The translations under genes were made by a program, and so were the position numbers. Shown in pieces: positions 33,406 through 55,293 of a stretch of DNA of 64,000 bases (its first letter is position 1; each line of letters opens with the position of its first letter). The stretch covers positions 59,458,001-59,522,000 of the forward strand of contig NC_083287.1 of NCBI RefSeq assembly GCF_963506605.1, given 5' to 3'. The notes beneath the pieces were generated by a model, which saw only the letters and a program-made list of their open reading frames with translations, made no database searches and was not told where the DNA came from. Origin of the DNA: Zootoca vivipara (lineage: Eukaryota).

Positions 33406-36400
33406 ATGGCAGAAGGGGTCCAAATGCAGAGGGAGGTGATGCTGGAAAATTGCAAGCCAGTGGCCCCACTGGGTGAGGACAACCCCCTCTTTCCTCTCTT
33501 TATCAAAGATAGTTTTTTTGGGGGGGGGAGATCTGGGGGTTTCTGCTGCGTGAAGAGCTCAGGGTCCGAGGCACCCGCTCCACACAGACACAGACTAGCA
33601 AAGGGTCAGCAAAGTTTTGCTGGCAGGCAGTCTGGCCACTAAAATCGGTCCAGGAAGAGCAGGGAGTGGATCAGAAAGGGAGGATAAATTGGATGCCCCT
33701 TTGAAGAAAGCTCTCCTTCATGGGGAAGTTAAGGTGTGGTGGTTGGGGGGGGGACAGGATGGGAAGGAGGGGGAATGGCCTCTTTGACAGTCCCTCTTTA
33801 TCCAACTTTATCCCAACCCCCACCACACACACAGACACTATATTTAAAATCAAAAGAATATTGTATTTAATTTATAGTGAAATGGGGGGGAGGGAGAGGT
33901 TTATGTGTGAATGTAACCAAAAAGGAGGAACCAAATAAACCACCTGTGACTTGTTTTCACAGACCCATCCTGGCTCTTCTGATGTAGAGTTCCCTTAGTT
34001 TTAAGGTGTTTTTTACTATTTCTACAGATTTCCAAGGGTGGGGAGGTGCAATGTCATCCCCCCTCCCCACACACGCTTCTTGAGTTGGACAAAGTCCTTC
34101 AACGTGGGCAATTTATTTATAAAATTTATAAATATATACACCACTTGATTGTTTTTAAAAAACAAATTCAAAGCAGTTTACAAGAAAGAGGGGGGAAATA
34201 AAATTTTCAGTAGGAAAATTTTAAGACCTTCTAAAAGCTGGGTGGTGGGGTCTGAACTTGGGCTTAGTGCAGACCAGGGTTGGCTACCATTTGGGGGCCC
34301 ATCAGCCCCGTCCACAAAATGCTCAACCTGAGTTTAGTGGCTCCCTTCGCACGCTCGCGGCGTGTCGGGGTGTACACCTTGTTGGCCTGCCTTTGGGTGA
34401 AGGCGTGCAGGAGGCACAACCCCCCCCCCTTCACCTTACACAAAGGTAGGCTTGCAGCGTGCTTCTTTTGTACACTGGGGTCGTCTTTATGAGGCACAGA
34501 GGGGAATGACCGACCAGTTGCCGACATGCGTCACTCAATACTTAGATTTGTGGGTTTCTTTCTTTGGTAGCTTTTGTGCACCCCTTTATTTGAGTGCTGT
34601 CTGACCGAACCTTCCAGCTCCGCTCTTTAGCTTTTAAATTCTGACTGTCTTTTGGTTTGAAACATGAGCTGTTTTGTGCAATGGGTCCAGTGCAGGAGTT
34701 TTATGATACCTCCGTGGGAAAATCTGCATTCAGAGTTGCAAGGGAGCAGCTGCCTTGGAGAGACTTTGGGGACTCTGGTGGTGGCTGTTTTCATAGAATC
34801 ATAGAATCATAGAGTTGGAAGAGACCACAAGGGCTATCCAGTCCAACCCCCTGCCAAGCAGGAAACACCATCAAAGCATTCTTGACATATGGCTGTCAAG
34901 CCTCTGCTTTAAGACCTCCAAAGAAGGAGACTCTACCACACTCCTTGGTAGCAAATTCCACTGCCGAACAGCTCTTACTGTCAGGAAGTTCTTCCTAATG
35001 TTTAGGTGGAATCTTCTTTCTTGAAGTTTGAATCCATTGCTCCGTGTCCGCTTCTCTGGAGCAGCAGAAAACAACCTTTCTCCCTCCTCTATATGACATC
35101 CTTTCATATATTTGAACATGGCTATCATATCACCCCTTAACCTTCTCTTCTCTAGGCTAAACATACCCAGCTCCCTAAGCCGTTCCTCATAAGGCATCGT
35201 TTCCAGGCCTTTGACCATTTTGGTTGCCCTCTTCTGGACACGTTCCAGCTTGTCAGTATCCTTCTTGAACTGTGGTGCCCAGAACTGGACACAGTACTCC
35301 AGGTGAGGTCTGACCAGAGCAGAATACAGTGGTACTATTACTTCCCTAGATCTAGATGCTATACTCCTATTGATGCAGCCCAGAATTGCATTGGCTTTTT
35401 TAGCTGCTGCATCACACTGCTGACTTATGTCAAGTTTGTGGTCTACCAGGACTCCTAGGTCCTTTTCACATGTACTGCTCTCAAGCCAGGTGTCACCCAT
35501 CCTGTATTTGTGCCTTTCATATTTTTTTTTTTTGCCCAAGTGTAGTACCTTACATTTCTCCTTGTTAAAATTCATCTTGTTTGCTTTGGCCCAGTTGTCT
35601 AATCTGGTTTTAGACCACGAAGCAGCAAGAAAGGAAGATTCCCCTTCTCCCCTTCTCTCTCTCTCTGTCCTATATTGGAGGGTCATGGTCTTCTTTCAGC
35701 TCCTCTAAAGCCGGGAGCTAAAGAGAAGACCTTGGCTTCTCTTTTTGGCACTCGCTTTGGGCCTGTAAGGAGTCAAATCCATGTTTCCACAGGGTGAATA
35801 TGGATTGAATCTGCTTTGCGGACATGCCCCAGATCTTTGCAAACGTACACCGATTAGACTTCCAGGCCTGACAAGGGACTGAAGGCAGCCTAGTGCTGGC
35901 CTCCCTCCATGGCCCAGGCCGGGACCCCCAGCCGGTTGCCATGGACTCGCCCTTCTCTTCCTTGCAGAGGGAATGGAGGGGGCCTGGCTTCCTCCCTTGC
36001 AAGAACTGCCCTCGCCCTGGAAGGCAGGGGGTTCTTTGCCCCCTCATGGGTGCCCAGACCCAGCGAGGTGGGAGCTTGACCTGACTGCCGCCGGATGGCT
36101 CATTTGTGGCCCCTTTGGAGACCCCATGGCTCGAAGCAAGGCAGTCTCGTGGTGCAGGAGGCCCAGCTGCGCTCCTGCTTCCCCATGGAAGGATCCCAGG
36201 GGCAGCTCGGGGCTTTTACGTCCTGTTTTCAGGCCAGGAGGCTGGGCTTGAATGTCTGCTGAGGACAGCCTGGCCTCTGTGGGCATCTTAAGGACAGAGG
36301 AAATGCATCACACGCCATGCCATGTGTTTGGTCCATCTTCCCTACGAAGGAAGGTCGCAGCATTTGGGACTTTTCAGTTTAGAGAATAGGAAACGGAGAG

Positions 36401-38946
36401 GCAACATGGTAGCGGTTTATCAAATGATGTGTGGCCTGGGGAAAGTGGAGAGAGGAAAGTCACGTAAGAAATCGTGGACATCCAAGGAAGCTGAATGTTG
36501 GGGTATCCAGGACAGATGAAGAAAGTCCTTTACGCTGCACAGTGAATCTGTGGAACTCTCCGCCTCAGGAGGCAGGGGTCGCCACCAACCTGGATGGCTT
36601 GAAAAGAGCACTCGACAACTCCACAGAGGACCAGGCTCTTGGTGGCCACTAGCTATGATGGCTCTTCTTTGCCTGCACGGTCAGACACAAATAAAGGGCT
36701 TGGCCCTTTGGGGGCGTTTGCCTGGCATGGCGGGAGGCAGAGATTTCTGGTGACTCACTGGCTGGTGACTGATGCAGGCAGCTTCACACCTCCAGGTGGT
36801 TGCTCAATGATGTGGGGTGAATAAGGGCAGGTGTGACCTCGCTCCCCAGGTGGGAAAGCTATAAGGGGGAGGGAGAGGCAGGTGGACGGACAAGCAGACG
36901 GATGGAAGCAGAGCTCTGAGGGCTGCCGGGGGTGAAAGGGGCAACTAGCCCCTCAGAAAGGAAAGGGGTGAGTGGGTCAGCCGGCGGCGGGTGGGCACGG
37001 TAGATGATGAAGGGAGAGGGGAGGTGTGTGGGAAAGAGGGTCAGGAAGTGCTTGGTTAATGGAAGGGAAGGGGCTGGGGTGGGGCTTCACCTGTCCTGGG
37101 CATCTCTGTACATCATCCAGCCGCCCCCCCCCCCGGTCTTGTGGCCCCAAAGCCAAAGTCTGATATTTCCCTTCCCTTCCCTAGGTTCCTTCCTAGTCTC
37201 AGATTCTATGATTCTTCCCCTGCTTCCCCAACTCCCAATGATTCTCAGCAACTGGCCTTTATGGGCATCCTGCTGCCCTCATGTGTAGCCTTGTCTCCAC
37301 GAGTTTGTCCAGCCCTCTTTCAACCCTGTCTAGTTTGGTAACCATCAGTACTTCTTGTGGCAGCGAGTTCCACAGTTTATCTGTACGCTGCATGAAGAAT
37401 TGCCCTCTTTGATCTGTTCTGAATCTTCTGATGTTCAGTTTTGCTGGAAGAACACATCCGGTTCTAGTATTTTAAGAGTGGGGCGAGAGAGACTTCTCTC
37501 TAGCCGCTCTGCATGCCTTCTGTAATCTCGCCCTCCCCTGCAGCATAAATCTGCCTCCCTTTTGCTTCCTGTTGGCTGGCTGTTCTTGATCCGGCACCAG
37601 CGTGGCCTAGTGATTAGAATGCCAGGCCAGGACCTGGGAGAGACCAGGGTTCGAATCCCCGCTTGGCCGTGTAGAAACCAGTCATTGCCTCTCAGCCCAG
37701 CCTACCTTGCAGGGTTGCTGTGGGGATCAAAGGGGAGAAAGGATAACTATGCTTGGAGGCACAGGTAGGATATAAATGCAATGAATCAACGGGAACAGCT
37801 CTTCCCAGCCTTCTCTTTTGGAATGCAAGCACCGCCAACATGGGCAACCGCCTGGATGTGAGTCAGGCTCCCAGAGGCCAAGTAGCACCTTTGGGAGCCA
37901 AGTCGGAAGGGGTTTTACCTGCTGCGCCCGGGAACCGGATTTCCTCCAGGCATGTTGGAGGAGCAGAGGTTGCCAGGCCAGACACCCTTGGGATAAAGCA
38001 GCCCAGAACAAGCGGAAGTTTCCTTCTGCTCCTTTGGGGACGTCACAGGCAGGGGGGGCTGCCTCCTCATCCTCCTCATCATCCTCACAGCGGCTTTTGC
38101 TGCCCGGGTGAGAGCTGCTGAAGTCGGCACTTAGGGGGCAGGTGTGCTGGGACAGTCTGTGGGTCTGGATAGTGGTTGTGGGGGAGGCCGAGGGCCAGGT
38201 CCAAGCCCAGCACTGCCAGGAGCCAGGCAGAGACGCCTCCTGCGGTGCATGGGGTTCAGCTGGGCTGCCTCTGGATTTGAGATGGGATTGCCCAGCAGTC
38301 GCTTCTCCACCCCATTTTGACATGGCAGCTGCACAATCCTCCTTTGCATGGCGCCCAGCTAAACTGTGGAACTCCCTCCTGCAGGACGCAGTGAGGACCA
38401 CTGGCCTCGGTGGCTTAAAAGAGGGTTAAACTGATCCATGGTGGAGGCGAAGGCTCTGGGCGACTCTCGCTAGGATGGCTCTGCTCTGCCTGCCCAGCCG
38501 GGGGTAACAATGGCTTCTGAATCCCAGTTGCTCTTGTGCTCAGATCCTGCTTGTGGTTTTTCTCATCTGGTTGGCCCCAAGGGAACAGGAGGCTGGACCA
38601 GACATGCCCCTGGCCTCATCCAGCAAGCAGGCTTTCCTTATTATGTTCTCATGGAACTCCAGGTCCAGAGGCAGGGAGGGAGGGATCTGTGGCCGCTCCA
38701 CTTGATCCTGCCCCTTTGGCCTGATCCAGCCAGGCTCTTTGGGGTTTCTTAGGCTCCCAGCGCCTCTGCCTCCTGACTTTCCAGGATGTGTGGGAAGGAG
38801 CTGAGCCTTCCCTAATCTCTGGAGGCATCAGCGGAGGGGGAGTTGCATCTCGGGTTCAAACTCAGGCTGTGGAGCAGAGAGGTGAGTGAGACTCGGCCCT
38901 GAGTCAGGAGTGAGTCAGGAGAGCTCAAACCCCCAGGAGGACAGAA

Positions 38947-38987
<41 letters not shown>

Positions 38988-41900
38988 GCAACACTGCACC
39001 AAGGGGAGGGGGTTGGCTTCCTTGCGGTGCAATCTGGTGACAGTCACATGGCTTTTATAATGAAGCGCCTTAGATGCCCCTTTGTCCATCTCTGGCATCA
39101 GGACAAAGGCTCTGGGCCTGGGCTGTCCTTCGGGGAGAGCTGCTGGGCTGTGAGGGGGTGCTCTTTGAGGGGCACCTTGAGGTGGGGCTCTGGGGTGCCC
39201 ATTTCAGCTCAGCTGCAGGCCTTCCTTTCCTCAGGGGCCCAGAGTCATCGGCTTGTAGAGCTGCAAGGGACCCTGAGGGAATTCCAGACCAACCCCCTGC
39301 AATGCAGGAACTGTGGCAGAAGAATGGCCTGTGCTCTGGGTCTCAGAAGGATGGCTGCTGTTTGCGCATGGGCAGGGTGGGGTCTTAGGGAATAAACCCT
39401 GTGGAGTCGGCCTGCACACACCCAGGATTGCCGTGATAGCAAGGGTTGAGTTGAGTCTTTGCATATATAAAAGGATGTCATATAGAGGAGGGAGAAAGGT
39501 TGTTTTCTGCTGCTCCAGAGAAGCGGACACGGAGCAATGGATTCAAACTACAAGAAAGAAGATTCCACCTCAACATTAGGAAGAACTTCCTGACAGTAAG
39601 AGCTGTTCGGCAGTGGAATTTGCTGCCAAGAAGTGTGGTGGAGTCTCCTTCTTTGGAGGTCTTTAAGCAGAGGCTTGACAGGCATATGTCAAGAATGCTT
39701 TGATTGTGTTTCCTGCTCGGCAGGAGGTTGGACTGGATGGCCCTCGTGGTCTCTTCCAACTCTACGATTCTATGATTCTACCCCCTAGGGAACAGCTAGG
39801 GATGTCAGCTTCAAAGTGCCCTCTTGGGGGCAGGTTGTGCTGTGCAAAGGTTTTGATGTGCTCCCCAACCCAAATTGTTAGCTGTTGTAATCTTAGCAGC
39901 GGTTAGAAGGTTGGACACTATTTATGGATCATTTTCTGGAATAACATCTTTTGGATGTTATCTTTTAGAAGCCCCAAGGCTTCTAAGACAAGGCAAAGCG
40001 GGTGGCTTGCGGATAAGCTTCCGCCCAGCACCTCTCTCTTTGGAAACATACTACTGGTTGGAGCCCCCCATTTGTTTATTACATTTGCACCCCACTTTTC
40101 CTCAGGGAGGTCCAGGTGGTGTCTAGAGGTCTCCTCCTCACAATGACCCTGCGAGGGAGGTTTGGCTGAGAAGCAGGGACTGGACTCAAGGTCACCCCCA
40201 GCCAGCTTCCTGGCCGAGGGGGGATTTGAACCCTGGTCTCTCCCAGTCTGAGCTGCTAACCACTATGCCACACTGCTTGCAGAGAAGTGTCGTGTGGCGG
40301 ATATCTCACCTGCCACACCTGCAGGAAAAGGACAAGCCACGTGGTGGAGGGAGAGCCAGGATCAGGATCGAGTGGGTGGGTGGGTGGGGGTTGCAGGCAC
40401 CCAGAATGTTGTTTTCTTCCACTTCCCAAGAGGCTGCTAGCTGGCCACTCTTTGGTTCAGAGTTAGCAACTCAGATAGGTCAGCTAATTGCCAAATGGTA
40501 CCTTAAACTTCAGTTGTGGTCCCCGCAATGGAATGGCTAGGCATCATTTTTTCATCTGTGAATCCCCTCCCCCATTTCTATACCATTTTATATTTTAAAG
40601 AAAAAAATCTCAAAAGTGCTTTACAACCCATTGAAACATCAAATAAAACCATCCGGAACAAAATAAAAAACCCCCCAAAAAATCAAGCTTCAAGGGGAAT
40701 ATTTCAGATCCTTCTCCAAGCGACATTTTGGTTTCCCCATATTTATTTGGCGACTTCATTTATAGAGCTGCCCTACAGCAGAAGAACGGCAGGAAGGCAG
40801 CGTGGGGCAGTGGTGAGAGTGTCAGATGAGGACCTGGGAGATCAGGGTTCAAATCCCCACTCGGTCCTGAAGCTCACTGTGTGACCTTGGAGTTAGTTGC
40901 AACCTCTTAGCCTACCTCACAGGGTTGTTGTAGGGATTAACTCACTAAGGGGCATGAACCATGTACTCCTTGGGAGATAAATGCAATAAATGAGCTCTTC
41001 TGCTCACCTGATTCAAAAAGCTGGAGGTGCCTGGGGAATTTTGAGCACTGCTTCTTTCTCCTTGGCAGACTCTGCATCCACCAAAGATTTAGCCGCCTGT
41101 GACCTTGAGGAGGAGGAAGAGGGCGAGCAGAAACAAGGGGAGGCCAACGGGGCAATGGAGGAAGACATGTATGTCGGGGAGCCCCCTGGCGAGAGAGAGG
41201 CAGCCCTCACTGACCCCCCTGCGCAGGACGAACCAGGCAAAGGAGCCTCCCCCAACAGCAGCAGCCCAGGTAGCACTTTGGGGCTGAATGTATGGGGCAA
41301 AAGGGAAAAGCCATTCCTCAGATCAGAGCCTCCCACACTTTGGGGGCCACAACCCCCCCCCCAAGTCCCATAAACTCATCCCAGTGCCCCACCCCGGCCC
41401 TATTAAATGCATTATTCAGAACAGTGCTTTACAGCGAGGGAAATTACAACAATGGATTTCACATCGAGAACAATTAATTGCTTGTTCCAATTAAATCCAA
41501 TTAAAATTATTCATGTTATTCATTTCATTTCTATATATCTGTAAGCCACCTTGAGTCCCTGCCAGAGGAAAAGGCAGGGTCTCAATAAATATAAATATAA
41601 AACAATAAAGTCGTACTTTGGAAACCAAATGGAATCCGTTCCGGAAGTCCGTTCAACTTCCAAAACAGTTGGAAACCAAAGCGCGGCTTCTGATTGGCTG
41701 CAGGAAGCTCCTGCAGCCAATCGGAAGCTGCAGGAAGCCCTGTCGGATGTCCAGCTTCCAAAAATAGTTCCCAAACCAAAACAGTCACTTCCAGGTTTGC
41801 GGCGTTCGGGAGCCAAAACGTTCAAGAACTAAGCTGTTGGAAAATCAAGGTACGGCTATATAAGCACTTTTTATTTGTGACAAAAAACCTTCAAAATGGT

Positions 41901-44900
41901 TTACAACTTGCATTAAAATGTTCCAAAATAAAACATCAAATATAAAATATGCATTCTGAGGGTTTTGTTTTGTTTTTGTTTTTTTTTACAATAAAGCAGT
42001 GTGTAATTTTTATGAAATAAATAAATGAACGAAATGGCAGCATCTTGGAGCAGTGCTTCCCTGCCGGAGCCCCATTTGGCAGCCCTGCCTCCACTGCAGA
42101 GCCACATTATGCCTGCTCTGCCATTGTAAGAGCTCGGTCTTGTCGTGTGGATCTTTTACACTTTGGAACTCCCTGCCTGTTGACTTCCAGCAAGCGCTTT
42201 CGCTGCGCTCCTTTCGGCACCTGCGAAAAAACACCCCTGTTTTAGAGAAGCCTGCCCAGATGTTCAGGAAGCTGATGGGAGATTTAATCTGCTCTGCGTC
42301 TGTTGTTTTAGCTTTTCCAAAGTCTCGGATGTTTGTTATGAGTTCCTCTTACTAGTAAAGTCTTGTTTTATCTCTTTTTTTGGTCAAACACTTGGAGGTT
42401 CTTCCTTTTTAACTGAAAATCTTACGGAAGAAATGACTCCTCAGAGCAGCCCTGTCTCTCCACTTTGGGTTGCTATACATCTGGAATTTCCTGGACAAAT
42501 CCAGAATACTGCAATCGCAAGCTGTGTCTGGGCAAAAATCAGGGAAATGTCCAGGGCAATCCAATGTTGGCAGTGTTGGTTTTGCACAAAAAAGGTCAAC
42601 AACTGTTTTGTCCAGATTTTCACTTTCTGAAATATGTCAACCCTCTCTCCGCTTGCTCTCTAGGCTGCCAAGGCCCCCCCTGGATGTCCCCCCGCCCTCC
42701 AGATCCACCTGGCGCCTGGCAGGGCCTCTGCACCTGGGAGTGCTGGCACCAGCGAGTCCTGGAGCTCCTGGAGCAGGAGCCGCCGGCCAAGAGCCCCCCA
42801 CGGGCCGCTCAGGTGAGCCGAGGGAGTGGGCCGTGGGGTCCTTGGCAGGAGGGAGGGGGAAGAAGCAAGAGGGGAATGTCCCTTGCCAGTTGCTGGACGC
42901 CACTGGGGGGGAGGAGGAGACTCTTGTGGGCTCTTCCTCTATTCTTATGGAGCCTCCAGGTCCAGAGGCAGTCTATCTGGACTCCTAGGTTCTTTGGGGA
43001 GTTTTTCCTGCTGAGAACAGGAGGCTGGCTAGAGGGGCTCCCTTTGGCCTGATCCTGCAGCCCCGTCTCCTGCTCTTACGTCCAGGGCAGGGCCGAGCGG
43101 GAGTCACTGCTGGGGACGCAGGGCGCTTCCTCCTCTCCCGCAGGGTGGGTGGGACTTCTCTGTGCCAGACGGCCTTTCTCTTTTTGTGCACGGCACCCTC
43201 CCCTCTTGGTGTGGGGTCTTTGTGGGAGATCTGCCCCAGCCCCCTGCAGCAGACGGGCCTTGGCTGTCCTCCCCTGGGGAGGGACCCCTCTCTCAGTGCC
43301 TTCTGCCTCACTCCTGATGTTTGGGGGTGCTCAGCCCAAGCTCTGAGCTGCCACATTCTCCCCCCCCACTTCTCTGGAAGAGGCTTATTTTCAGAGGGTG
43401 GGCAGAGGGTGCTAGCTCCCCTGACACCGAGCAGGATCCGGCCTGCTTTCCTTCCAGGTGACGTTTGAGGACGTGGCTGTCTACTTCTCGCCTGAAGAGT
43501 GGGCCCAGCTGATGGCGTGGCAGAAGGACCTGTACTGGGGTGTGATGAAGGAGAACCACGCCCTGGTGGCCTCGCTGGGTGAGGGTCCCCCTCCGAAAGC
43601 CCCCTGGGGGAGGGGGGGTCGCAGCCGCTGGCCCCGAGACACCCCGGAAGGGGAGGCAGCGGCTCTCTCGGGTGGGGTGGGGGTGATGGCGGAGCCTTCA
43701 AGTCAAATCAGGCAAGCTTCACCGGTGATCCACTGGATCCCTTGAAGTTCTGGCTTTACCCCCCCCCCCCATCGCCAGCTGAAGGCTCTTTGTCCTCCCT
43801 TCAGGCCCTTCCACCTCCACAAGGTCCAGCCTCTTCCTGAGGCCTCTCCTAGCTAAGCCTGGCTTGACATGGGCTTCCAAGGGGGGTGAGGCACATGGTC
43901 CCCCCTAGCCGGGACCATTAGGTGGAGCCTCCATGTTCTGCCGCAGTCTTCCTGTGAGTTCCAGAGAGGGCACCTGGCTGGGCCCTGCTCTCCAAGACCC
44001 AGGGGGCTGGGCTGGATTTGGCCCTGCTCTCATCCGGCCACCAGGCTCCTCTTCCTCCTTTTTGGCAAAAGTCCCCTCTCAGGGTGGCAGCGGACTAGAT
44101 GCCCCTTGGCGATCCCTTCCGACGATGCTTCTACGTCCAAACTCTTTTTCCGTGGCCAGGAAGGCCTGAGGCAAATCTCTGACCATTGCCATGGGGAAAC
44201 CAGTTAGAGGCCCTCTCGCTGCTTCCTTGCTCCTCCAGACATGCCACATCCACCCCCCATCTGCCCCCTTCAGGCCCTTGGCACACCCTTGGGCCCAAGT
44301 CTTTCCCGCAGGTGGTGACTTTTCCACTTTCTCTCCCTCGCATGCAGCACCTGCTCGTGTCCCCCAGCCAGAGGTCTTGGGCCGGATAGAGCGAGGGGAG
44401 GCCCCTCCTTCCGAGGCCCCCATGGAGGAAAAGCAGGAAGAGGCTCCCCGAGTGCCCAGCCCAGGTGAGTGAGGCCCCTCGAGGGGCGAAGGTACTGACT
44501 GAGTCCTGCCTTTAAGGGGGTTGGGCTAGATGACCCTTGGGGGTCCCTTCAAACCCTACAACTTTGTGAGCAGCAAATGCGGCCACTGCTGAACCCGATG
44601 CCTCTCAGTTGGCATCAGTTGGTGACCTGGTGCGCATGTGGGTTGGCTGCTCTGGGCTGGCTATGGAGAGCAGTGAGTGGGAATCCTTTTCTGGAGCTCC
44701 TGTCTCCTTTGTGCATCCACAGGAGAAACCCCTTGACAGGCAGGAGTCTGGGGGTGTCTTACCCCCAGGGTTACACCACCCCTGAGGTGTGGCTTCTTAT
44801 CCAAGGCGAGCAGGGAGCAGAGGAAGCTGCTCGATGTTGGTCTGTGGAGCTCAGGATTGCCTACACTGGCTGGCAGCAATCCCTGGCAGCGTTTTGCTCT

Positions 44901-46180
44901 TGTGCCCATCCTGCTGTGACCATCAGTGACGTCCAGCTGAGCTTCGGAGTTTCCTCCTCCTTGCCGTTGTCAGCCTTTCCCAGCATTTATGGTGTAGAAA
45001 CCTCCTTGCAAATTCTGCGGGAACAGTTTATTGCCTCAGGACAACTCAAACCCACGAGGGGCATCGAGTTGAGAGGTGCTGGGGCTTTAGACCTGCCAAT
45101 GCACATACACACATTCTTAGAATCATAGAATCCTAGAGTTGGAAGAGACCACAAAGGCCATCCAGTCCAACCTCCTGCCGAGCAGGAAACACCATCAAAG
45201 CATTCTTGACATATGCCTGTCAAGCCTCTGCTTAAAGACCTCCAAAGAAGGAGACTCCACCACACTCCTTGGCAGCAAATTCCACTGTCGAACAGCTCTT
45301 ACTGTCAGGAAGTTCATAGAATCATAGAATCCTAGAGTTGGAAGAGACCACAAGGGCCATCCAGTCCAACCCCCTGCCAAGCAGGAAACACCATCAAAGC
45401 ATTCTTGACATATGCCTGTCAAGCCTCTGCTTAAAGACCTCCAGAGAAGGAGACTCCGCCACACTCCTTGGCAGCAAATTCCACTGTCGAACAGCTCTTA
45501 CTGTCAGGAAGTTCATAGAATCATAGAATCCTAGAGTTGGAAGAGACCACAAGGGCCATCCAGTCCAACCCCCTGCCAAGCAGGAAACACCATCAAAGCA
45601 TTCTTGACATATGCCTGTCAAGCCTCTGCTTAAAGACCTCCAAAGAAGGAGACTCCACCACACTCCTTGGTAGCAAATTCCACTGTCGAACAGCTCTGAC
45701 TGTCAGGAAGTTCTTCCTAATGTTGAGGTGGAATCTTCTTTCTTGTAGTTTGAATCCATTGCTCCGTGTCCGCTTCTCTGGAGCAGCAGAAAACAACCTT
45801 TCTCCCTCCTCTATATAACATCCTTTTATATATTTGAACATGGCTAGCATATCACCCCTTAACCTTCTCTTCTCCAGGCTAAACTCCTTGGCAGAAAGGG
45901 AGGGAGGACAAATCATGCCAGAGGCCTGGGGCCTTGAGCTGCTTCAGACAGGGCCCCGCAGCCAGCATCCTGAAGACAAACCAGCCAAGAGCCAGACCCA
46001 GCAGCTAGGGCCATTTTGCACATACTGTACACCCAAATGGCACCGGCAAGGCCTCTCCAGGCTTTCAGGCTCAGGGGAATTTCTACACACAGAGTAAGTG
46101 CTCCGTCAGAGAGTTAGGGCTTCCCTCCAAGCACAGTGGCCTGTCCTGTGTGCCTTGGGGATGACTCTCTCCTGCTTCCC

Positions 46181-46218
<38 letters not shown>

Positions 46219-49200
46219 TGGCTCTGGCTGCGGCAGGACTCGCCCCCAGCCCCCTCCCTCTCTCCCCCTGGGTGGCAGCGGCAAAGGCAGTCCCTTCCCC
46301 CGGAGACCTTGGGGGTTCCCTCCTCCAGCCTTAAATTTAGACACAGCTGGATTGTAAGCAAGCAAACAAACTTCAAGGCAGTTTACAAAAAAGATAAGCC
46401 CATCAAATGATCGTGAAGAAAAATTAACAACAATTTAAGACTTTTGAAGAGGAAAAATAACACCAAACTAAAAAGCAGAATTAAAACTCGCGCCAGCATT
46501 CTAAGCACCTGGTTGGCTTGTCTAAACAGGAATGTTTTTTAGCAGGTTCTGAAAGGGGGGAAGGCGAGTACCTGCCCAGTGTCAATAGGCAGGGAGTTCC
46601 AAAGGGCAGCTGCTGCCGCACTAAACAACCAAGTTCTTACAGATGTGGAACAGGTCTTAGGTGGCACCTGGAGCTGTGCCCGTTCCTCTGATCAAAGCGG
46701 TCAAGTGACACCTGTGGGGTCAGACGATCTCCTAGGGAGACGGGTCCCAAGTTGTTAAGGGACACTAATAGTAGCTCTAGGAATTCTCTTTCCATCCCTT
46801 TTCCTTACAAACAGGTAGGTGCAATTTGACTCTACCTTCTAAGGTTCCCTTCTCCTTCTCTCTCCCACTCTCTCTTCTGGGGGCAGGTTCTGGGGCTAAG
46901 GGGCAGCTGGAGGTCAGGAGAGGACCAGGTGGGGAGCATCCCTGCAGCAAGACTCCGACAGAAAAAGCCAAGAGGGACGCTCTGGGTGAGTGGCGCCAGA
47001 AGGCTTAGTGGCAGAGGCCCTGCCTTGCAGGAAGAAGGTCCCGGGTTCAAGTCCCGCTGGCATCTCCAGGGAGGGCTGGGAGAAAGACCCTGCTGAGACC
47101 CTGGAGAGCCATTGCTGCCGGTCAGTGCAGGCCACCCTGGGCTAGAGGTATGCAGCTGGATGGTCTGGGGCATGTGCTCCCTCTCCACCCACCCTGGGGG
47201 TGTTTTCCTGCCCTCCTGGGAAGGAGTGGCTCTGGGCGAATCAGGCTGGCCAGAAAGGGAACCTGAGGGGTGGGGGAAGGGGCACGGGAGCACAAAGGGG
47301 AGCTCTCTGCAAATGGGGGGGGGCTACTTGAGTTGCAGGTGAGTTTCTCCAGGGACACAGAGGGTCTCTGCCTCCCTCCGGAGCAAGGCTGTTTGTGCCC
47401 CTTTGTGATTTGAAATGGGGTGGTCCGAAATGGGCAGAGTCACTGGGGGACCTGCAAAGGCCATCACATCCAGAAGAAGGTTGCCTTGGCGACCTTTTAT
47501 TTCTTCCCCCAGCCACCTGCTTTTTTGCTGAAGAACCTTGAGCTTCCCAGCTTGGAGTGCACCCTCTTTCCTAGCCCTGGCATATAGACGTCATGCCGTG
47601 TCACTATTCATTTATATGGCACCTATTGGCCTAAAACGACACCCTGGGGCAAAGCAGAGAATGCAAACACAACAGAAATCAAACTAAATCTTGTTTCAAA
47701 AGTATTCAAAGACATCTGTTTTCCTTCCCTTAAAGTCCTTCAAGAGCAGCTCCTGGCTTGGAGGGTCCCAGGCAGGGTGGGGGCAAGGCAGGGGCATGGC
47801 TGGCCCTCTGGTCTCTCACCTGTATTGACCTGCCCTTTCTCCTCTGTCCTCCTTCCCCAGCTGACACCAAGCCCCACATCAAGTGCGAGGAGCAGCGGGG
47901 GGACCCCCAGGGGCCAGCCACCCACCACTGCAAGGACTGCGGCTCCAGTTTCCCCGACCGGGACGCCCTGATTTCCCACGTCCTGCGCACCCACTTTGGC
48001 GAGCGAGCGCTGCCTTGCCCGCAATGCGGAAAGTTCTTTGGCAGTGACAGCAGCCTGGCGGCCCACCAGAGCACCCACGGCCTGGAGCGAGTCTTCACCT
48101 GCATCGACTGCAAGAGCACCTTTGTCTACGAGGAGCAGGAGGCAGGCCGGATCCACGCCCAGCTGGCCCTGGGGAAGCTTTTCAAGTGCTTTGGCTGCAG
48201 CTGCAAGATCGCCGCCCTCCTGGCCAGAGACCAGAAGCCAGAGGCACAGGAGGGCTGCCCTCCCTTTGGGGAGCTGGATGCCACCTTCTACAGGTGAGGA
48301 GTCTGGGATTTGCGGGAATGGATCCTCCAGAGTCAGGGGTCACCTCCAGGCATCCTTGACCTGAGAAATTCATCTTGTGGGTTTTTAAAATAAAAAGCTC
48401 CTGGCCTTTGGTCATTCTCTTCCCAGCCTTCCACCATCCAAGGGCCAAAACTAACAAGATTGAATTTCCAAAGCAACAAATGTCAGGTTCTGCAATTAGG
48501 CAGGAAGAATCAGATGCACAAATCTAGGATGGGGGATGCCTGGCTTACTAGCAGCGCATGTGAGAAGGATCCTAGGGGTCTTGGTGGACCACAAGCTGAA
48601 CATGAGTCAACAGTGTGATGCAGCAGCAATAGGAAAAAGCGAATGCTATTCTAGGCTGCATCCACAGAAGTCTAGTGTCCAGATAATAGAATCCTAGAGT
48701 TGGAAGAGACCCCCAAGGGCCATCCAGTCCAACCCCCTGCCGAGCAGGAAACACCATCAAAGCATTCTTGACATGTGCCTGTCAAGCCTCTGCTTAAAGA
48801 CCTCCAAAGAAGGAGACTCCACCACACTTCTTGGCAGCAAATTCCACTGCCGAACAGCTCTTACTGTCAGGAAGTTCTTCCTAATGTTTAGGTGGAATCT
48901 TCTTTCTTGTAGCTTGAATCCATTGCTCCGTGTCCGGTTCTCTGGAGCAGCAGAAAACAACCTTTCTCCCTCCTCCATATGACATCCTTTCATATATTTG
49001 AACATGGCTACCATATCACCCCTTAACCTTCTCTTCTCCAGGCTAAACATACCCAGCTCCCTAAGCCGTTCCTCATAAGGCATCGTTTCCAGGCCTTTGA
49101 CCATTTTCGTTGCCCTCCTCTGGACACGTTCCAGCTTGTCAGTATCCTTCTTGAAGTCATAGAAGGGAAATAAAAAAATTCCTTCAGTAGTACCTTAAAG

Positions 49201-52200
49201 ACCAACTAAGTTTATATTTTGGTATGAGCTTTCGTGTGCATGCACACTTCTTCAGATACCAAGAAGTGTGCATGCACACGAAAGCTCATACCAAAATATA
49301 AACTTAGTTGGTCTTTAAGGTGCTACTGAAGGAATTTTTTTATTTTGCTTCGACTCAGACCAACACGGCTACCTACCTGTATCATAGAAGGGAAGTCATA
49401 GTCCGGCTCTCTTCTGCCTTGGTCAGACAAACACCTGGAACACTGTGTCCCTTTCTGGGCTCCACAATTTAAGAAGGATGTTCACAAGCTGGAAGGTGGG
49501 CAGAGCAGGGAAACCAAGACGATCAGGGGTCTAGAAGCCAAGCCTTATGAAGAGCAATTGAAGGAGACGGGAAGATTAGCCTGGAAAAGAGGAGTGAGAG
49601 GAGAGGAGTGAGAGGGACCCAAGGGAGAGCCATATTCAAATATCTCCACGGCTGTCACAGGGAAGAAGGAGCAAGCTTGTTTTCTCCTGCTCTGGAGGGC
49701 AGGATCCAAACCAAATGTCAGGGAGGTTGCTGGCTACCCTCGAGCAACGACACTCCAAACCATCTTGTCTTTAGTACTTTTATTGTGAAAGCTATTTACA
49801 ATGCAAGAGCTTCCTCGAAAACATGTCTACTCAGTACGATCAGATTCTCCCAATGGCGCTTTTCGGCTCCTCCCCCAGCAGGGTAGTTTGGGGACCCCAA
49901 ATCTCCTCCCCCTGCATTTGCGAGCCGCTGATCGCCTCAGTTCCGGGGTGAATTTGAAAGGACGCCCCTCTGCTGTTTCCCCGCTGGAACTCTCTGCCGG
50001 CCCCTCCTTCCTTGCTGGTATCCCAGGCTGCAGGTAGGGCTCTGAGCCCTGGCCCGCTCCTCTCACTTCCTCCTTCCTGTCTCCTGTCCCTCCGCTGTTG
50101 TCCGAGCCATTCGAAGAGCTGGATTTGATGAGGGGTGGCTGTTCCTTGCATACCTGCCAAGTTCCTCTCTGAAAAATAAGGGACCGGACGGAAGTAGCAT
50201 ACCGGAAGTAGCGCGGCGGCCATTTTGGAACTGGGCGGAGCATGCTCAGAAGTGACTTTTGATGCTGCTGTGCCCAGTTCCAAAATGGCCGCTGCACCAG
50301 AATAAACCGGGGGGAAACAAAAAAAATCGTTTTTTCGGCTGGGGACAGCTGGAAAAACGGGGTTTTTCCTGGGAATACGGGAGACTTGGCAGCTATGGTT
50401 CCTTGTAAGCCCATCCCTTACACCAATGGATTCAAGTTACAAGAAAGGGTATTCTGACTAAATATCAGGAATAAGCTTTCGGACAGTAAGATCTATGCCA
50501 CAGCAGAAGGGTCTCCCTTATGAGATGGTGGACTCTCCTTCCTTGGAGGTCTTTCCCATCTCTGGAAGAACTATACAATTCCTGTTGCCTTACAAAACCA
50601 AATAATATTTTACAGGATTCATCTCATCCTGGATATAGTCTTTTTGCACCATTGCCTTCAGACAAGAGTTACAGAACAATTAAATCAAGAACGAATAGAT
50701 TAAAAAACAGCTTCTATCCAAGAGCTATAACCATCTTAAATGCTGTAACTAAATAATATGATCTTGGGGAGTTGTGATGGGTGTGGGTGTAATTGTGTTT
50801 TTGTTTTGTTTTTATGGGATGGCATTCAATTTCGTTGTACTATGTACAATGACAATAAAGTATCTATCATCCATCTATCTATCTATCTTCAAGAGAGGTT
50901 GGATGGCCACCTGTCAGGGATGCCTTAGCTGTGATTCCCCCATTGCTGCGGATTGGCCTGGATGACCCCGGGGGTCCCTTCCAACCCCTCCATTCTGCCT
51001 CACTGCCCCCCTCTCCTTTTCATCCCTCAGCCGCCAGCGCGCAATGGAGCAGGTCCGCCAGCGGGCCGCCCACTGGACCACCTCTGAGACCAAGGCTTTT
51101 GTGGAGCTGTGGGGGGACGACCGCGTCCAGACGGCCCTTTTTGACAACTATCGCAACGAGGTGCAGTACAAGCGGCTGTCGGACAAGATGCGGAAGATGG
51201 GCTTCCACCGCAACCTGGAGCAGTGCCGCCAGCGGGCCAAGGACCTGCGCAGGGGCTTCAAGGAGATCCAGGACGGCAACCTGCACTCCAACCGGGCACG
51301 GCAGACCATGCCCTTCTTTGCCCTCCTGGACCGCTTCCTGCTGATGAGCCGGGGGCTGGTGGTGCCCAAGGTGTGCGTCAACAGGACCAAGCAGAGGGGG
51401 CGCAAGGGCAGGGGGCGCAGGGAGGAGCCCCAGGGGCAAGCCCCCTTCCTGCTCGCCCAGCACCCCAACTTGCAGGACCTGGCGCTGCAGGAGCAGGATC
51501 CGTACCTCCATGCCCTGGCGCTCCCTGGCTTCCACCTGCAGAGCCACTTCACAAGCCAGTATCGCCAGGGGGCCAGCCTCCCTGGCTACCAGCTGCCGCC
51601 CCCCGACCAGGACCCCCCGGGCAACGCTGTGGGGCTGCCTGGTGGTCCGCTGGAGGGGCAAGACAAGGACTCGCCTGCCCTGCGACTGGCGGACTTCTCC
51701 CTACGGCCGCAGGACCCAGACGCCTCTCTCGCCATGGAGTCCTGCCGGGCAGCTGCTCGCAGCCAGAGCCAGGACATGGTGCTGAGCCCCATCAATGGGC
51801 TTTCAGCCACCAGCAGCCTCTGGTCAGAAATCGCCAGCATGACTACTATGGAGAACCCCACTGGCGTGGCAGCCCCAGGAAGTGCCCAGCGTGAGTATCT
51901 GCTTATTGGCTTATTTATTCCTTCACAGTATTTACAGCCTGACCTTCATTGAGCGTTTTCCATCCCAGAGCAAAGTAGTAGAAATGAGCACAGAAGCAAA
52001 ATATATAAAAACTGCAGAATCATATAAACAGGACCACTAAACAACTAGAAAACTTCTATCATACGCTAAACCAGGCACCCCCAAAATATGAACAACCAGA
52101 TTAAAAAAATTATGAATGACCAGATTTAAAAAATTATGAACGACCAGATTAAAAAAATTATCTACAATTATCAACAGGGTTAATGATTGAAAAGAAAATT

Positions 52201-54540
52201 AAATATTTAGGAGTGTGGTTAACTTGTCACTTATGGGAGGGATATCCGATAAAAATGCATGTGCTAACAAAAATGTTATTTCTGTTTCAAACAATATCAG
52301 TGATCACCAATACAATATGCTTTTAAAAATGGCAGAAAAATATCACTAGATTTATCTGGCAGGGGAAGAAACCAATAATAAAGTATGCCAAAGAAAGAGC
52401 TGGATTCTCCTTACCAGATCTGAAATTATATTTTGAGGTGTCTTGTCTTTGCCAGTTAAAGGAGTGGATGTCATTGGAAAACTGTTCCATATTAGATCTT
52501 GACGGACATTTGGCTGGCACGCCTATCTGTGGTATGACAAGGTTAAAGTTCATAAAGCTTTTTTGAATCATGTTATAAGAAAACTGGTGTATGAAGTATG
52601 GGACAAATACAAAAAATTATTAGAACACAAAACACCATGGTGGCCCTCTCCACTTGAAGCAATATTGGTGAAAAAAAGGAATACGAGAAATGATTGGACA
52701 ACATATAAAGAATTATTAAAAGTAGATCAAGGTTTAAAATTAAGGAGGTTTTAAGATATAAGGGAATTAGTACCCATTTTGTTGCAATATCACCAACTTA
52801 ATAAAGTGTTTGAGTTGTACAAAAAGAAGGGTTTTTTAAAATAAAACCTCCCAGTTTGAAAGGGAATTGTTAGAAAATAATTTAATAAATGGGGAAAGTT
52901 TGAAAAACTATTGTAAACAATGACACACATTGGTAGGGTTGACAAAAATTGAACTATAAAGAATTTATAAGAATAGAGTTATGAAAGAGATGCAGAGGAG
53001 GAAATCATTATATTAAGATCCACAATTGGGGGAGGGGGGAGTCAAAGGGAATTATATGTTTGTTTTTATTTCACTTGTATGTGTAAAATAGAAAATGCAA
53101 AAATAAAATAAGAGTCCGGCAAAAGCACCTTCCTGGTGTCAATAGGCAGGGAGTTCCAAAGTTCTGCCACACTAAAAGATCCAAGTTCTTACAAAGGTGG
53201 AGCGAGTATTCTGTGGCACCTGCACCCGTCCCGTTCTGCCATGTGGGGCAGGGCTATTTTGCAGAAACCGAACTATAAATATTGAGAAAGCAACTCATGC
53301 CTCTCTTTTTCTTCCTTCCACCCCCCCCCCATCAGCCTGGCACCCTGGGAAGGCCCCCAGCTCCTCTGCAAAGCGGATGCGCGACCTCCGCTTGCGCCGC
53401 CGGAGGCAGCGGGCCGCCATGGCACGGGTGCTGCTGGGCGCCAGCTACCGCCCCAACGACCGGACAGTGTGGAGCAAGACGCAGAAGACGGACTGGTGGG
53501 ACAACCTGGTGGCCGGGCCAGCCGAGGACGGCGAGTGGGTGCGCTACTTCCGCATGTCGCGGGAGGCGGTGCTGGAGCTGGTGGAGAGGCTGCGCCCCGT
53601 GCTGCAGCGGGAGGACACCAACATGCGGGCCGCCATCCCCGTCGACAAGCGCGTGGCCCTCACGCTCTGGAAGCTGGCCACCTCGGAGAGCTACCGCTCG
53701 GTGGCCCACCAGTTTGGCGTGGGCGTCTCGACCGCCTCAGTCATTGTCATGGAGGTGTGCGAGGCCATTCACGACGTCCTGCTGCAGGACGTGGTCCAGC
53801 TGGGGGATGCCCAGGCCGTCATGGAGGGCTTTGAGCGGCTTGGCTTCCCCAACTGCATTGGCGCCGTGGACGAGACCCACATCCCCATCCTGTGCTCACC
53901 CCACGGTGCGTCGGCCTACATCAACGGCAAGGGGCTGGTTTCCATGGTGCTGCAGGCCCTGGTCGACAGCGCAGGGCGCTTCATGGATGTCTACGCCGGC
54001 TGGTCAGGCGGCCTGCAGGACTCGGGCCTGCCGTGGGGCTCCCCGCTCTTTGAGCGCATGGAGAAGGGCACCTTTGGCCCCCAGACCACCACTGAGATCG
54101 AGGGTGTGGCCGTGGGACCCGTCCTACTGGGGGGTCCTGCCTGCCCCCTGCGGCCGTGGCTGATGAAGCCGTACACAGACACCCCGGAGGGGCCTCGGCA
54201 CCACTTCAACCTGTTGCTGGGCAAGTGCCGCAGGGCCGTCACCTACGCCTTTGAGCGGCTCAAGGGCCGCTGGCGCTGCCTCCTCAAGCGCCTAGACGTG
54301 GCGGAGAAGAACGTCCCGCTGGTCATCGTCGCCTGCTGCATCCTGCACAACATCTGCGAGAGCCGCAACGAAGCCATGCAGGAGGGTTGGGAGGAGGGCA
54401 TGGACTACGCTGACCTGCCCTCGGCGGAGGGCCACGCAGACGCCTTCTCGGACGCGGAAGAAGGGGCTGGGGAGGCGCACGGCGTCCGTGAGGCCTACTG
54501 CGCATTCTTCGAGAAGAGGCGGCAGGCAGAGGAGCTCTGA
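33406..54540 (+). CDS. Predicted KRAB / C2H2 zinc finger / Myb-SANT / Harbinger transposase fusion protein, 1083 aa. Exons: 33406-33472, 41069-41269, 42664-42812, 43458-43578, 44348-44464, 46887-46985, 47861-48293, 51031-51890, 53336-54540
   Basis: Nine exons with polypyrimidine-AG acceptors and GT donors. Phases 1,1,0,1,1,1,2,1 all match, giving 3252 nt (1084 codons) with no internal stop. AATAAA lies at 54809-54814. The first three exons and 46887-46985 are less certain than the KRAB, zinc finger, Myb and transposase exons. Confidence 0.8.
34791..35605 (-). mobile_element. Young CR1 LINE 3' portion (about 0.8 kb)
   Basis: ORF2 C-terminus ([12 protein letters not shown]...[18 protein letters not shown]...RRLRGDMI) and a TCATAGAA-repeat tail. 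Confidence 0.93.
38948..38985. repeat. (CA)n microsatellite
   Basis: Seen directly in the sequence. Confidence 0.95.
39460..39780 (+). mobile_element. Young CR1 LINE 3' fragment
   Basis: Same family as 34791-35605. Confidence 0.9.
40798..40940 (+). mobile_element. tRNA-derived, MIR-like SINE (a related copy lies at about 37598-37730)
   Basis: A/B-box-like head (cagtggtgagagtg...ggttcaaatccc) and core ctcacagggttgttgt. Confidence 0.6.
41617..41860. mobile_element. Partial Tigger-like MITE with an internal hairpin
   Basis: Palindrome gcttctgattggctgcagga-agc-tcctgcagccaatcggaagc and a TIR-like end (aaggtacggctata). Confidence 0.55.
43458..43578 (+). CDS. KRAB-A box exon of the fusion gene
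   Basis: [40 protein letters not shown], with the typical phase 0 / phase 1 boundaries. Confidence 0.95.
44348..44464 (+). CDS. KRAB-B-like exon of the fusion gene
   Basis: [15 protein letters not shown] resembles the KRAB-B consensus KPDLISRLERGEEP. Phase 1-1. Confidence 0.8.
45118..45883 (-). mobile_element. CR1 3' end present as three tandem copies (199-bp period)
   Basis: Units start at 45118, 45317 and 45516. The third unit extends further into ORF2. Confidence 0.92.
47003..47150 (+). mobile_element. tRNA-derived squamate SINE (related minus-strand copies at about 5630-5740 and 6525-6665)
   Basis: agtggcagag...ggttcaagtccc...ggcatctccagg...gagaccctggagagcc. Confidence 0.6.
47861..48293 (+). 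CDS. Zinc-finger exon: two canonical C2H2 fingers and two degenerate CxxC units
   Basis: [29 protein letters not shown] linker, [21 protein letters not shown], then CIDC and CFGC without His pairs. The exon ends at a strong donor (CAG|GTGAGG). Confidence 0.9.
48686..49156 (-). mobile_element. Young CR1 3' fragment nested in the older CR1
   Basis: [34 protein letters not shown]... with a CR1 tail. Confidence 0.9.
49170..49381. mobile_element. Penelope-like element terminal-repeat foldback
   Basis: 85-bp inverted arms (49168-49252 and 49261-49345, one mismatch) with an 8-nt spacer. A 13-bp direct repeat (tcatagaagggaa) lies at 49157-49169 and 49382-49394. Confidence 0.8.
49219..49262 (-). ncRNA. 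Minimal type I hammerhead ribozyme motif
   Basis: Minus strand reads UUGGUAU CUGAAGA A GUGUG CAUG CACAC GAA AGCU C AUACCAA: stem I of 7 bp, CUGANGA core, stem II, GAAA, palindromic mini stem III and a UC cleavage site. Confidence 0.75.
49716..50422 (-). mobile_element. Solo LTR (about 450 bp excluding the nested MITE)
   Basis: TG...CA ends with terminal inverted repeats tgtcaggga and tcccttaca, flanks ccaaa/ccaat, and AATAAA on the minus strand. It splits a CR1 sequence. Confidence 0.7.
50149..50397. mobile_element. hAT-superfamily MITE
   Basis: TIRs catacctgccaagt and acttggcagctatg, with a perfect 8-bp TSD (gttccttg) at 50141-50148 and 50398-50405. Confidence 0.88.
50553..50886 (+). mobile_element. 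Rex1/Babar LINE 3' fragment
   Basis: PSLEELY...[41 protein letters not shown] followed by AATAAA and a (TATC)n tail. Confidence 0.8.
51031..51890 (+). CDS. Myb/SANT-like (trihelix/MADF, MSANTD-type) DNA-binding domain exon
   Basis: [16 protein letters not shown]...[36 protein letters not shown]...[12 protein letters not shown] matches the Myb_DNA-bind_4 pattern of Harbinger Myb proteins and ZSCAN20/29-type domains. Confidence 0.9.
52087..53112 (+). mobile_element. Degraded L1-clade LINE fragment in the intron between the Myb and transposase exons; starts with a 24-bp x3 tandem repeat (52087-52158)
   Basis: Broken frames ([49 protein letters not shown]) are homologous to the L1 at 11496-12860. 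The end is A-rich. Confidence 0.8.
53336..54540 (+). CDS. PIF/Harbinger transposase-derived (HARBI1/ALP1-like, DDE_Tnp_4) terminal exon
   Basis: W..YFRMSR, HTH-like [66 protein letters not shown] and [10 protein letters not shown]. Confidence 0.93.
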
Positions 54541-54808
54541 GGGGCGCTGTGCGTTGTGTGTGTGTGTTGTGCGAGGACACCCCCTTCCCCACCCCACCCC
54601 GTGGGTGTTGCAAAGACGCGGGGGGGGGGGGGGAGAGAGACAGGAACTCAGGCTAACTCAGGTTACAATTCTCTTCCGTGACTTCGCAGGGGGACAACGT
54701 CCAGGGTCCCCCTCGGTGAAGTCTGCCTGCTCACCGGTTGCACTGTTTTGACCTTTTATAAACTTTTTATAAAAATTGGCTTAGTACCAAGTTTTCACCT
54801 TGGACCTC

Positions 54809-54814
54809 AATAAA
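54809..54814 (+). terminator. Polyadenylation signal of the fusion gene
   Basis: AATAAA about 270 nt after the stop codon, with T/GT-rich sequence downstream. Confidence 0.7.
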
Positions 54815-55293
54815 TCCTTGTTCTTCTTGAAAGGAATTTGGTGGGCGTGTCTTAAATGTGAAATTTCTCAGGTTTCCCCAGTCGTGAATGAGGCTGGCAG
54901 GATGGGGGGGGGAGGCCCCCAGTTCACTTTGCAAAACAGGGCTTGGTGCAGAATATGAATGAGCACAAGAAACACATGGGTTGGGGACAGTGAAGGGACA
55001 AGTTCAGTAGGGTGCGCTGATTTTTACAACAAAGTTGTAATGATTTGGGAATTCAAGAGATTTCTTGGTTAAATTAATATAGCTTAGTTTTGCTTGGTAA
55101 GTAAACTGTAAGATGGCATGGACATCATTAAAAATGACTGCAGTAATTTTATATTAATATTTTTACTTTTATTTATTAATACTATTTATTTTTAGCATTA
55201 CCTGACACTTTCAAAAGGTAAAATTAAAATAATTTGGTTTTCCAAAAGCAGTTGATGTGCTTTTTAATCAAATGTAGATTTGCCAAGCTAAAC

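Follow-up and report, generated by a model that had tools for sequence, protein, structure and literature searches.

The stretch of DNA considered here (hereafter the window) comprises 64,000 nucleotides of the lizard Zootoca vivipara (assembly GCF_963506605.1, contig NC_083287.1, forward-strand positions 59,458,001 to 59,522,000). Between positions 33406 and 54540 it holds the coding exons of a single gene, LOC118092265, in which a KRAB box and zinc fingers are followed, within one open reading frame (ORF), by a Myb/SANT-like exon and by the transposase exon of a PIF/Harbinger transposon. Harbinger is a textbook cut-and-paste transposon that depends on two obligate proteins, and the gene probably carries both of them.

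Gene model and exon structure

The features of the gene are listed below, all on the plus strand; a slash marks an exon boundary, and P0170 and P0168 are the long and the shorter predicted isoform.

31100..31507, plus strand: CpG-island promoter and probable 5' non-coding exon (GC 0.77, CpG observed/expected ratio 0.79; donor ...ccccag/gtgggt near 31507)
33406..33472, plus strand: coding exon 1 (donor G/gtgagg; 100% match to P0170 residues 1-22)
41069..41269, plus strand: coding exon 2, an acidic low-complexity N-terminal region (tblastn of P0170; splice sites read)
42664..42812, plus strand: coding exon 3, which holds the start methionine of the shorter isoform P0168 (tblastn of P0170; splice sites read)
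43458..43578, plus strand: KRAB-A box exon (Pfam KRAB)
44348..44464, plus strand: KRAB-B-like exon (read from sequence)
46887..46985, plus strand: alternatively spliced coding exon of 99 nt, included in P0170 but not in P0168
47861..48293, plus strand: zinc-finger exon with two canonical C2H2 fingers and a conserved CxxC...CxxC block (donor AG/gtgagg)
51031..51890, plus strand: Harbinger Myb/SANT-like exon (Pfam Myb_DNA-bind_4; a transcript contig covers 51028-51890)
53336..54540, plus strand: Harbinger transposase exon, with a helix-turn-helix (HTH) region and an RNase H-like DDE_Tnp_4 fold (Pfam DDE_Tnp_4; spliced contig 51890/53336)
54808..54816, plus strand: AATAAA polyadenylation signal, about 270 nt past the stop codon (read from sequence)

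Mapping of the database protein on the window, combined with reading of the splice sites, gives nine coding exons with a total of 3249 nt, or 1083 codons. The zinc-finger exon ends ...TTC TAC AG/gtgagg at 48293, and the Myb exon is entered after a strong polypyrimidine tract and ...tcatccctcag/ at 51031, where it opens C CGC CAG. The Myb exon closes ...CCC CAG C/gtgagt at 51890; the transposase exon follows an acceptor that reads ...ccccccccccatcag/ at 53336, opens CC TGG and runs to a stop codon at 54538-54540. The RefSeq protein XP_034986032.1 (P0170, LOC118092265, Zootoca vivipara) likewise has 1083 amino acids and agrees in length, exon order and junctions; its junction residues are Ser 396, encoded by AG/C, and Pro 683, encoded by C/CC. 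Identity between the window and P0170 is 100% over the KRAB-A and zinc-finger exons, 99.65% over the Myb exon and 99.25% over the transposase exon, and the zinc-finger and transposase exons are 100% identical to the 954-residue isoform P0168.

GC at third codon positions (GC3) is 0.85-0.90 in the zinc-finger, Myb and transposase exons, against a GC of 0.35-0.48 in the two introns between them. Upstream lies a CpG island at 31050-31950 (GC 0.78, CpG observed/expected 0.66), and the N-terminus of the Podarcis muralis isoform X7 (P0171) maps to 31137-31514. A frameshifted fragment resembling L1 (about 52249-52811) sits in the intron that separates the Myb exon from the transposase exon, with 46-48% identity to an L1-like ORF elsewhere in the window. 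A first-pass annotation, made from the letters alone, had described co-oriented KRAB-A, KRAB-B, zinc-finger, Myb and transposase exons joined in phase 2 (zinc finger to Myb) and phase 1 (Myb to transposase) into one frame of 1083 amino acids, with GC3-rich Myb and transposase exons, a decayed L1 between these, a CpG island upstream and AATAAA downstream; each of these points agrees with the closer reading of the sequence and, for length and junctions, with the RefSeq protein.

The gene is already public in RefSeq as "uncharacterized protein LOC118092265", and the gene model itself is therefore not new. No paper describing LOC118092265 was found, and the databases annotate it only as "uncharacterized", in line with the first-pass remark that the architecture was not recognised as that of a named gene.

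Two further observations concern the ends of the zinc-finger part. If the zinc-finger donor is left unused, the frame ends at once (AGG TGA, with TGA at 48295-48297, one codon past the donor), and an AATAAA-like signal lies about 100 nt downstream of the donor (48294-48400); this stop and signal may mark where the ancestral KRAB zinc-finger gene ended, or may serve a short isoform. At the other end, the product of coding exon 1 resembles the C-terminal half of a KRAB-A box, a feature not shared by the non-lacertid orthologues.

Domains

The four Pfam families that the first-pass annotation had named for a scan (KRAB, zf-C2H2, Myb_DNA-bind_4 and DDE_Tnp_4) were all matched. The KRAB-A box that is required of a KRAB zinc-finger protein is present (PF01352; E 1.5e-20, 72.9 bits, profile positions 2-42 of 42). 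It keeps the DV and EEW motifs and reads VMKEN where the canonical form is VMLEN, a variant that is conserved in the orthologues. The KRAB-B-like exon gave no Pfam match, since the Pfam KRAB model covers the A box only. The zf-C2H2 model (5e-8) matched two stretches, which in Zootoca are the two canonical fingers. In Tiliqua, Varanus, Phrynocephalus and the geckos these fingers have degenerated or are absent. Beside them lies the CxxC...CxxC block (48100-48230; P0170 residues 331-372), with a mean identity of 65% against 46% for the adjoining canonical fingers; this block may bind zinc or make contacts in its own right.

The Myb exon, co-oriented with the transposase exon and 1.4 kb upstream of it, matches Myb_DNA-bind_4 (PF13837) with an E of 9.4e-17. 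The domain occupies residues 14-101 of the exon; behind it come a basic stretch, then a linker of low conservation and a PINGLS..LW.E motif that is conserved. This motif (PINGLSA.S.LW.E, 51788-51829), kept at the end of the exon within an otherwise variable linker, is a candidate for docking, either of the transposase part or of a different partner. The transposase exon matches DDE_Tnp_4 with an E of 5.6e-19, and its HTH region gave a sub-threshold match to HTH_Tnp_4 (21 bits against a cut-off of 27).

Catalytic centre and element ends

The transposase was aligned to 111 related Harbinger transposases and to 14 orthologous sequences. In the numbering of the exon, the triad of Zootoca is D178/G266/T302. 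The first catalytic Asp, in GAVDETH at residue 178, is kept. The Asp of LLGDxAYP (266) is Gly in all 14 orthologues, and D in 87 of the 111 relatives; the Glu of RxxVExxFGxLKxRW (302) is replaced by Thr, Ser or Ala in every one of the 14 orthologues, and is E in 81 of the 111 relatives. In an AlphaFold2 (AF2) model of the transposase (predicted local distance difference test, pLDDT, 89.2) the strands and helices follow the order of the RNase H-like core, and the triad positions lie where DDE residues usually do: 178 on strand 1, 266 just past strand 4 and 302 in the long helix that comes next. A Foldseek search of this model against the PDB returned no match at E 0.001 or better; the weak matches were nearly all DDE transposases or integrases, and no Harbinger transposase structure was among them. 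Set against an active PIF/Harbinger transposase, the exon has the DDE_Tnp_4 fold and lacks the intact D-D-E triad. Because the triad is lost, the protein is predicted to be unable to cut DNA, so that the transposase, as judged from its alignment, is one in which the fold has been kept and the nuclease is dead.

No credible terminal inverted repeats (TIRs) or target-site duplication (TSD) were found, as an inverted-repeat search over about 50400-55400 gave repeats at chance level only; the first-pass annotation had likewise seen no TIRs. Conservation of the domains, loss of the DDE triad and lack of TIRs together argue for domestication, which is what had been proposed.

Orthologues and conservation

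Orthologues were sought by an exhaustive HMMER search with the transposase exon and then by a full-length search with the best-matching Phrynocephalus protein. The top match of the exon was this 1125-residue protein, 85% identical, with the match at its C-terminus. The combination of KRAB, zf-C2H2, Myb_DNA-bind_4 and DDE_Tnp_4 is predicted, in RefSeq or GenBank models, in 13 squamate species including Zootoca: Iguania (Phrynocephalus, Pogona, Sceloporus), Anguimorpha (Varanus), Amphisbaenia (Rhineura), Lacertidae (two species of Podarcis, Zootoca), Scincoidea (Hemicordylus, Tiliqua) and Gekkota (Eublepharis, Sphaerodactylus, Gekko). Most of them, not all, have zf-C2H2, and the listed Pogona isoform has only a partial KRAB. 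Orthologues in related lizards, whose lack would have told against the first-pass proposal, are thus plentiful. Since the same architecture is found from geckos to iguanians, the fusion predates crown Squamata. No snake or Anolis orthologue was returned, although RefSeq annotation exists for both groups, in searches whose length and word filters weaken this negative; their absence could reflect loss or a limit of the search.

Both junctions are colinear in 11 of 12 aligned models; the Gekko japonicus model is without the zinc-finger exon and enters the Myb exon at the same place. In a comparison of 12 squamates, among them three geckos, mean pairwise identity reaches 88% in the Myb domain, 87% in the transposase N-terminus, 91.5% in the HTH region, 86.6% in the DDE region and 81% in KRAB-A, compared with 37-48% in the linkers; the canonical fingers stand at 46%. 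Fingers so poorly conserved suggest that functional DNA binding falls to the Harbinger modules instead. The methionine that heads the Myb ORF is Leu in six of the 12 species, and an independent start at the Myb exon is therefore not conserved. Between the window and a same-species transcript (X1, see below), seven of the eight listed exon differences are synonymous. Taken together, these figures indicate that the fusion is conserved across species under purifying selection, and LOC118092265 has the appearance of a single-copy host gene with orthologues across Squamata.

Transcripts

RNA evidence was drawn from X1, a same-species run available as Logan contigs and presumed to be RNA, and from three raw stranded RNA runs. 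A 2009-nt contig of X1 runs from 51028 to 51890 and continues without a gap on 53336-53999, which is the exact Myb-to-transposase splice; because a GT..AG intron is skipped, this contig is cDNA. It reaches 23 nt beyond 51028, a point at which the end of the zinc-finger exon and the end of the intron are indistinguishable because both end CAG, and very probably it continues into the zinc-finger exon. A second X1 contig stops exactly at the zinc-finger donor (48293) and has a similar k-mer depth, 5.5 against 6.9 for the first. The raw stranded runs gave depths of 0-4x on the exons, with the first mate mostly on the minus strand, the pattern that plus-strand RNA gives in most stranded libraries. 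The first-pass annotation had named both junctions as the place to look for RNA; 51890/53336 is now covered exactly by one contig, and for 48293/51031 the evidence is indirect.

Within the intron between the zinc-finger and Myb exons, CR1-like or Penelope-like repeats at 48600-49400 show an RNA depth of hundreds-fold, with many loose ends and strand-switch joints. This RNA consists of repeat-family transcripts and does not come from the fusion gene.

Proposed origin and function, and alternative explanations

LOC118092265 is best read as a conserved KRAB zinc-finger gene that carries the whole PIF/Harbinger protein pair in nuclease-dead form and acts as a silencer of the TRIM28 type, a reading to which we assign a probability of about 0.72. 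An ancestral KRAB zinc-finger gene would have captured an entire PIF/Harbinger element by splicing, the zinc-finger exon being joined from its terminal donor to the Myb-like ORF, and the latter, from a donor close to its own end, to the transposase ORF. The partnership of the Myb protein with the transposase and its role in nuclear import are established for Harbinger (PMC9392472, PMC9710019). From that biology, the Myb domain and the transposase HTH would supply sequence-specific DNA binding, and the docking of the two modules, which takes place in trans in Harbinger3_DR, HARBI1/NAIF1, ALP1/ALP2 and HDP1/HDP2, has probably been retained. The KRAB box, if it behaves as KRAB boxes generally do, would recruit TRIM28/KAP1 and silence the bound sites. 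Originally these sites may have been Harbinger ends or derived miniature inverted-repeat transposable elements (MITEs), and they may now be host regulatory sites.

That one element gave rise to both the Myb exon and the transposase is the simplest interpretation, though not a proven one. It is favoured because the exon is adjacent, co-oriented and intron-less, with a likely ancestral ATG and a stop 20 codons past the donor. With the Myb exon alone as query, in a search limited by length and shared words, only three orthologous fragments were returned. A Myb profile search added two stand-alone lizard Myb proteins, the nearest non-orthologous relatives being stand-alone proteins of 298-376 amino acids, and the ESM Atlas gave only generic Myb_DNA-bind_4 clusters.

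Several points weigh against the silencer reading as a whole. The three raw runs have zero depth over 48000-48399, compared with 1-4x on the Myb and transposase exons, at depths too low to weigh; the 48293/51031 junction is supported only indirectly, 51890/53336 being the one seen directly, in a single contig. A common origin of the Myb exon and the transposase is argued from adjacency, orientation and ORF shape rather than from phylogeny. Recruitment of TRIM28 is not assured because the KRAB box has MKE for MLE, a motif that matters for KAP1 binding in ZNF10, and Harbinger ends are putative DNA targets.

There are competing explanations. Only the transposase may have been captured, beside a Myb exon that already belonged to the host as part of a ZSCAN20/29-like or MSANTD-like factor, in which case two proteins of one element were never united. 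Host transcription factors with Myb_DNA-bind_4 are indeed known, for example ZSCAN20, for which a Harbinger origin is in turn proposed (PMC9392472), and the table of Cosby et al. (bioRxiv 10.1101/2020.05.07.082677, a preprint) counts the domain as a host domain in TIGD-G4-Zscan29. Both Myb searches, by exon and by profile, were limited by length and shared words. Against it, the exon consists of one ORF, without introns and similar in size to those of Harbinger, whose domain begins about ten residues past the likely ancestral ATG, its ORF stops shortly after the donor, it is co-oriented with a transposase exon 1.4 kb away, and its nearest non-orthologous relatives stand alone. The domain order of ZSCAN20/29 also differs from the zinc-finger-then-Myb order seen here, and a host origin of the exon is accordingly judged improbable. 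About equally improbable is that the locus mainly yields a short KRAB zinc-finger protein and, from an internal start, a separate Myb-transposase protein, the full fusion being minor or merely predicted. The TGA one codon past the zinc-finger donor and the AATAAA about 100 nt downstream would suit such a pair of products, as would the raw runs with reads on the Myb and transposase exons and none on the end of the zinc-finger exon, and the X1 contig, whose break 23 nt beyond the junction is what a branching of isoforms would produce. On the other hand, the RNA depths are too low to compare, the zinc-finger and the Myb/transposase contigs of X1 are of similar depth, the zinc-finger contig stops at the donor with no read-through, the methionine of the Myb exon is not conserved, and in 13 species the models hold the exons in one frame and conserve the residues at the junctions.

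Somewhat less unlikely is a real fusion that works without TRIM28, as an adaptor of a chromatin complex, its KRAB being a variant box with another partner. The conserved VMKEN variant is consistent with it, and the same D-G-x loss of the triad occurs in ALP1 (PMC4671723). Precedents for adaptors are ALP1/ALP2 with Polycomb repressive complex 2 (PRC2) and HDP1/HDP2 with a histone acetyltransferase complex, and variant KRAB domains that do not bind KAP1 are reported (PMC6745500). A KRAB match of 72.9 bits over the whole A box, with DV and EEW kept, speaks for ordinary KRAB function instead, as do the KRAB-transposase fusions tested by Cosby et al., which are reported to repress (bioRxiv 10.1101/2020.05.07.082677). 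A decaying transposon beside a KRAB zinc-finger gene, stitched to it by gene prediction, is scarcely credible, with only the general risk of automatic models in its favour. Such an artefact is contradicted by frames that are open and 86-92% identical between geckos and lacertids, by the spliced RNA contig, by the lack of TIRs and by a triad loss shared by all orthologues.

Neighbourhood of the gene

The genes upstream look like a NOS3-ATG9B-ABCB8 block; the distance from the ABC transporter to the start of the fusion gene is about 2 kb. The members of the block and two repeat features near the gene are as follows.

432-884, plus strand: presumably NOS3, by eye
8358-9080, minus strand: ATG9B-like (Pfam ATG9, 6e-82)
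28398-29003, plus strand: ABCB8-like (Pfam ABC_tran)
45195-45916, minus strand: three overlapping ORFs about 199 nt apart with nearly the same CR1-tail peptide
55305-58064, minus strand: intact ORF of 919 amino acids with Exo_endo_phos and RVT_1, just downstream of the gene on the opposite strand

The ORF at 55305-58064 is possibly a young long interspersed nuclear element (LINE), and the array at 45195-45916 looks like a tandem repetition of a LINE 3' end.

Comparison with known systems

To our knowledge, every Harbinger domestication studied so far keeps two genes. LOC118092265 may be without a described precedent: the two proteins of a two-component PIF/Harbinger element would stand in one polypeptide, joined to a KRAB box and maintained for some 200 million years across squamates as a nuclease-dead 'holo-transposase' that guides heterochromatin formation; this wider claim is put forward tentatively, at slightly less than even odds. 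An in-cis fusion behind KRAB would extend the transposase-capture route to new transcription factors. It would also provide a tractable system for the intramolecular contact between Myb and transposase, for the question of what the module binds, and for KRAB silencing as a defence against the parent element. If true, a single-chain fusion offers a naturally occurring case on which to examine why DNA binding and catalysis are normally encoded by separate Harbinger genes.

The closest published relatives are the KRAB- or SCAN-Harbinger fusions KHARBID1-4 and HARBID-G1-3 in Table S3 of the preprint of Cosby et al. (bioRxiv 10.1101/2020.05.07.082677). As in LOC118092265, a DDE_Tnp_4 transposase was captured by splicing downstream of KRAB, and those genes are likewise described from reptiles and as being under purifying selection. 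Its four KRAB-Harbinger genes accord with the first-pass statement that KRAB-transposase fusions have arisen repeatedly. At least seven KRAB-DDE_Tnp_4 clusters were recovered here (P0006, P0008, P0010, P0012, P0016, P0022 and P0041), among them KHARBID1 (Pogona 110070590, P0022) and KHARBID3 (Python 103055168, P0010). Their transposases are 40-46% identical to that of LOC118092265, with 41-46% for the fusions of the table, and none of them has Myb_DNA-bind_4; identity with KHARBID1-4 was rejected on these grounds, as was identity with HARBI1, since the best non-orthologous matches are at most 55% identical. In the table as given in the preprint, Pogona 110082590, Gekko 107118608, Podarcis 114607153 and Zootoca 118092265 are absent, and no Harbinger entry lists Myb. 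LOC118092265 is thus an old member missing from the preprint's catalogue of fusions. Among the best 150 transposase relatives, in which all proteins with a substantial N-terminal extension were scanned, Myb and transposase occur in one chain only in the orthologues of LOC118092265. In the sense of Cosby et al., a host-transposase fusion is in frame with host domains in one spliced transcript; this is the arrangement found here, with indirect evidence for the 48293/51031 junction.

The fusion resembles the pairs HARBI1/NAIF1 of vertebrates, ALP1/ALP2 and HDP1/HDP2 of Arabidopsis and DPLG/MADF of insects, in that both Harbinger proteins have been domesticated together, the Myb partner of these pairs binding DNA as well as the transposase (PMC4671723, PMC9392472, PMC9710019). 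Unlike such pairs, which consist of two genes and two polypeptides, the modules of LOC118092265 are exons of one ORF and are attached to KRAB and zinc fingers. Only separate gene pairs appear in reviews of Harbinger domestication (PMC9392472, PMC9710019), as the first-pass annotation had stated, and single-ORF Harbingers are reported only outside vertebrates (PMC9179366). The triad of Arabidopsis ALP1 is DGA in place of DDE (PMC4671723), which parallels the D-G-T seen here and would represent convergence between a plant and a lizard gene.

Like an autonomous PIF/Harbinger element, the gene has neighbouring Myb-like and DDE_Tnp_4 ORFs of the usual sizes; the differences are that no TIRs or TSD were found, that the triad is D-G-T, and that each species has one orthologous gene rather than many copies. 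Compared with canonical KRAB zinc-finger proteins, the gene shares a CpG-island promoter and the order of KRAB-A and KRAB-B exons followed by a C2H2 exon, but it has only two canonical fingers, and its zinc-finger exon, instead of being terminal, is spliced onward to the Harbinger modules.

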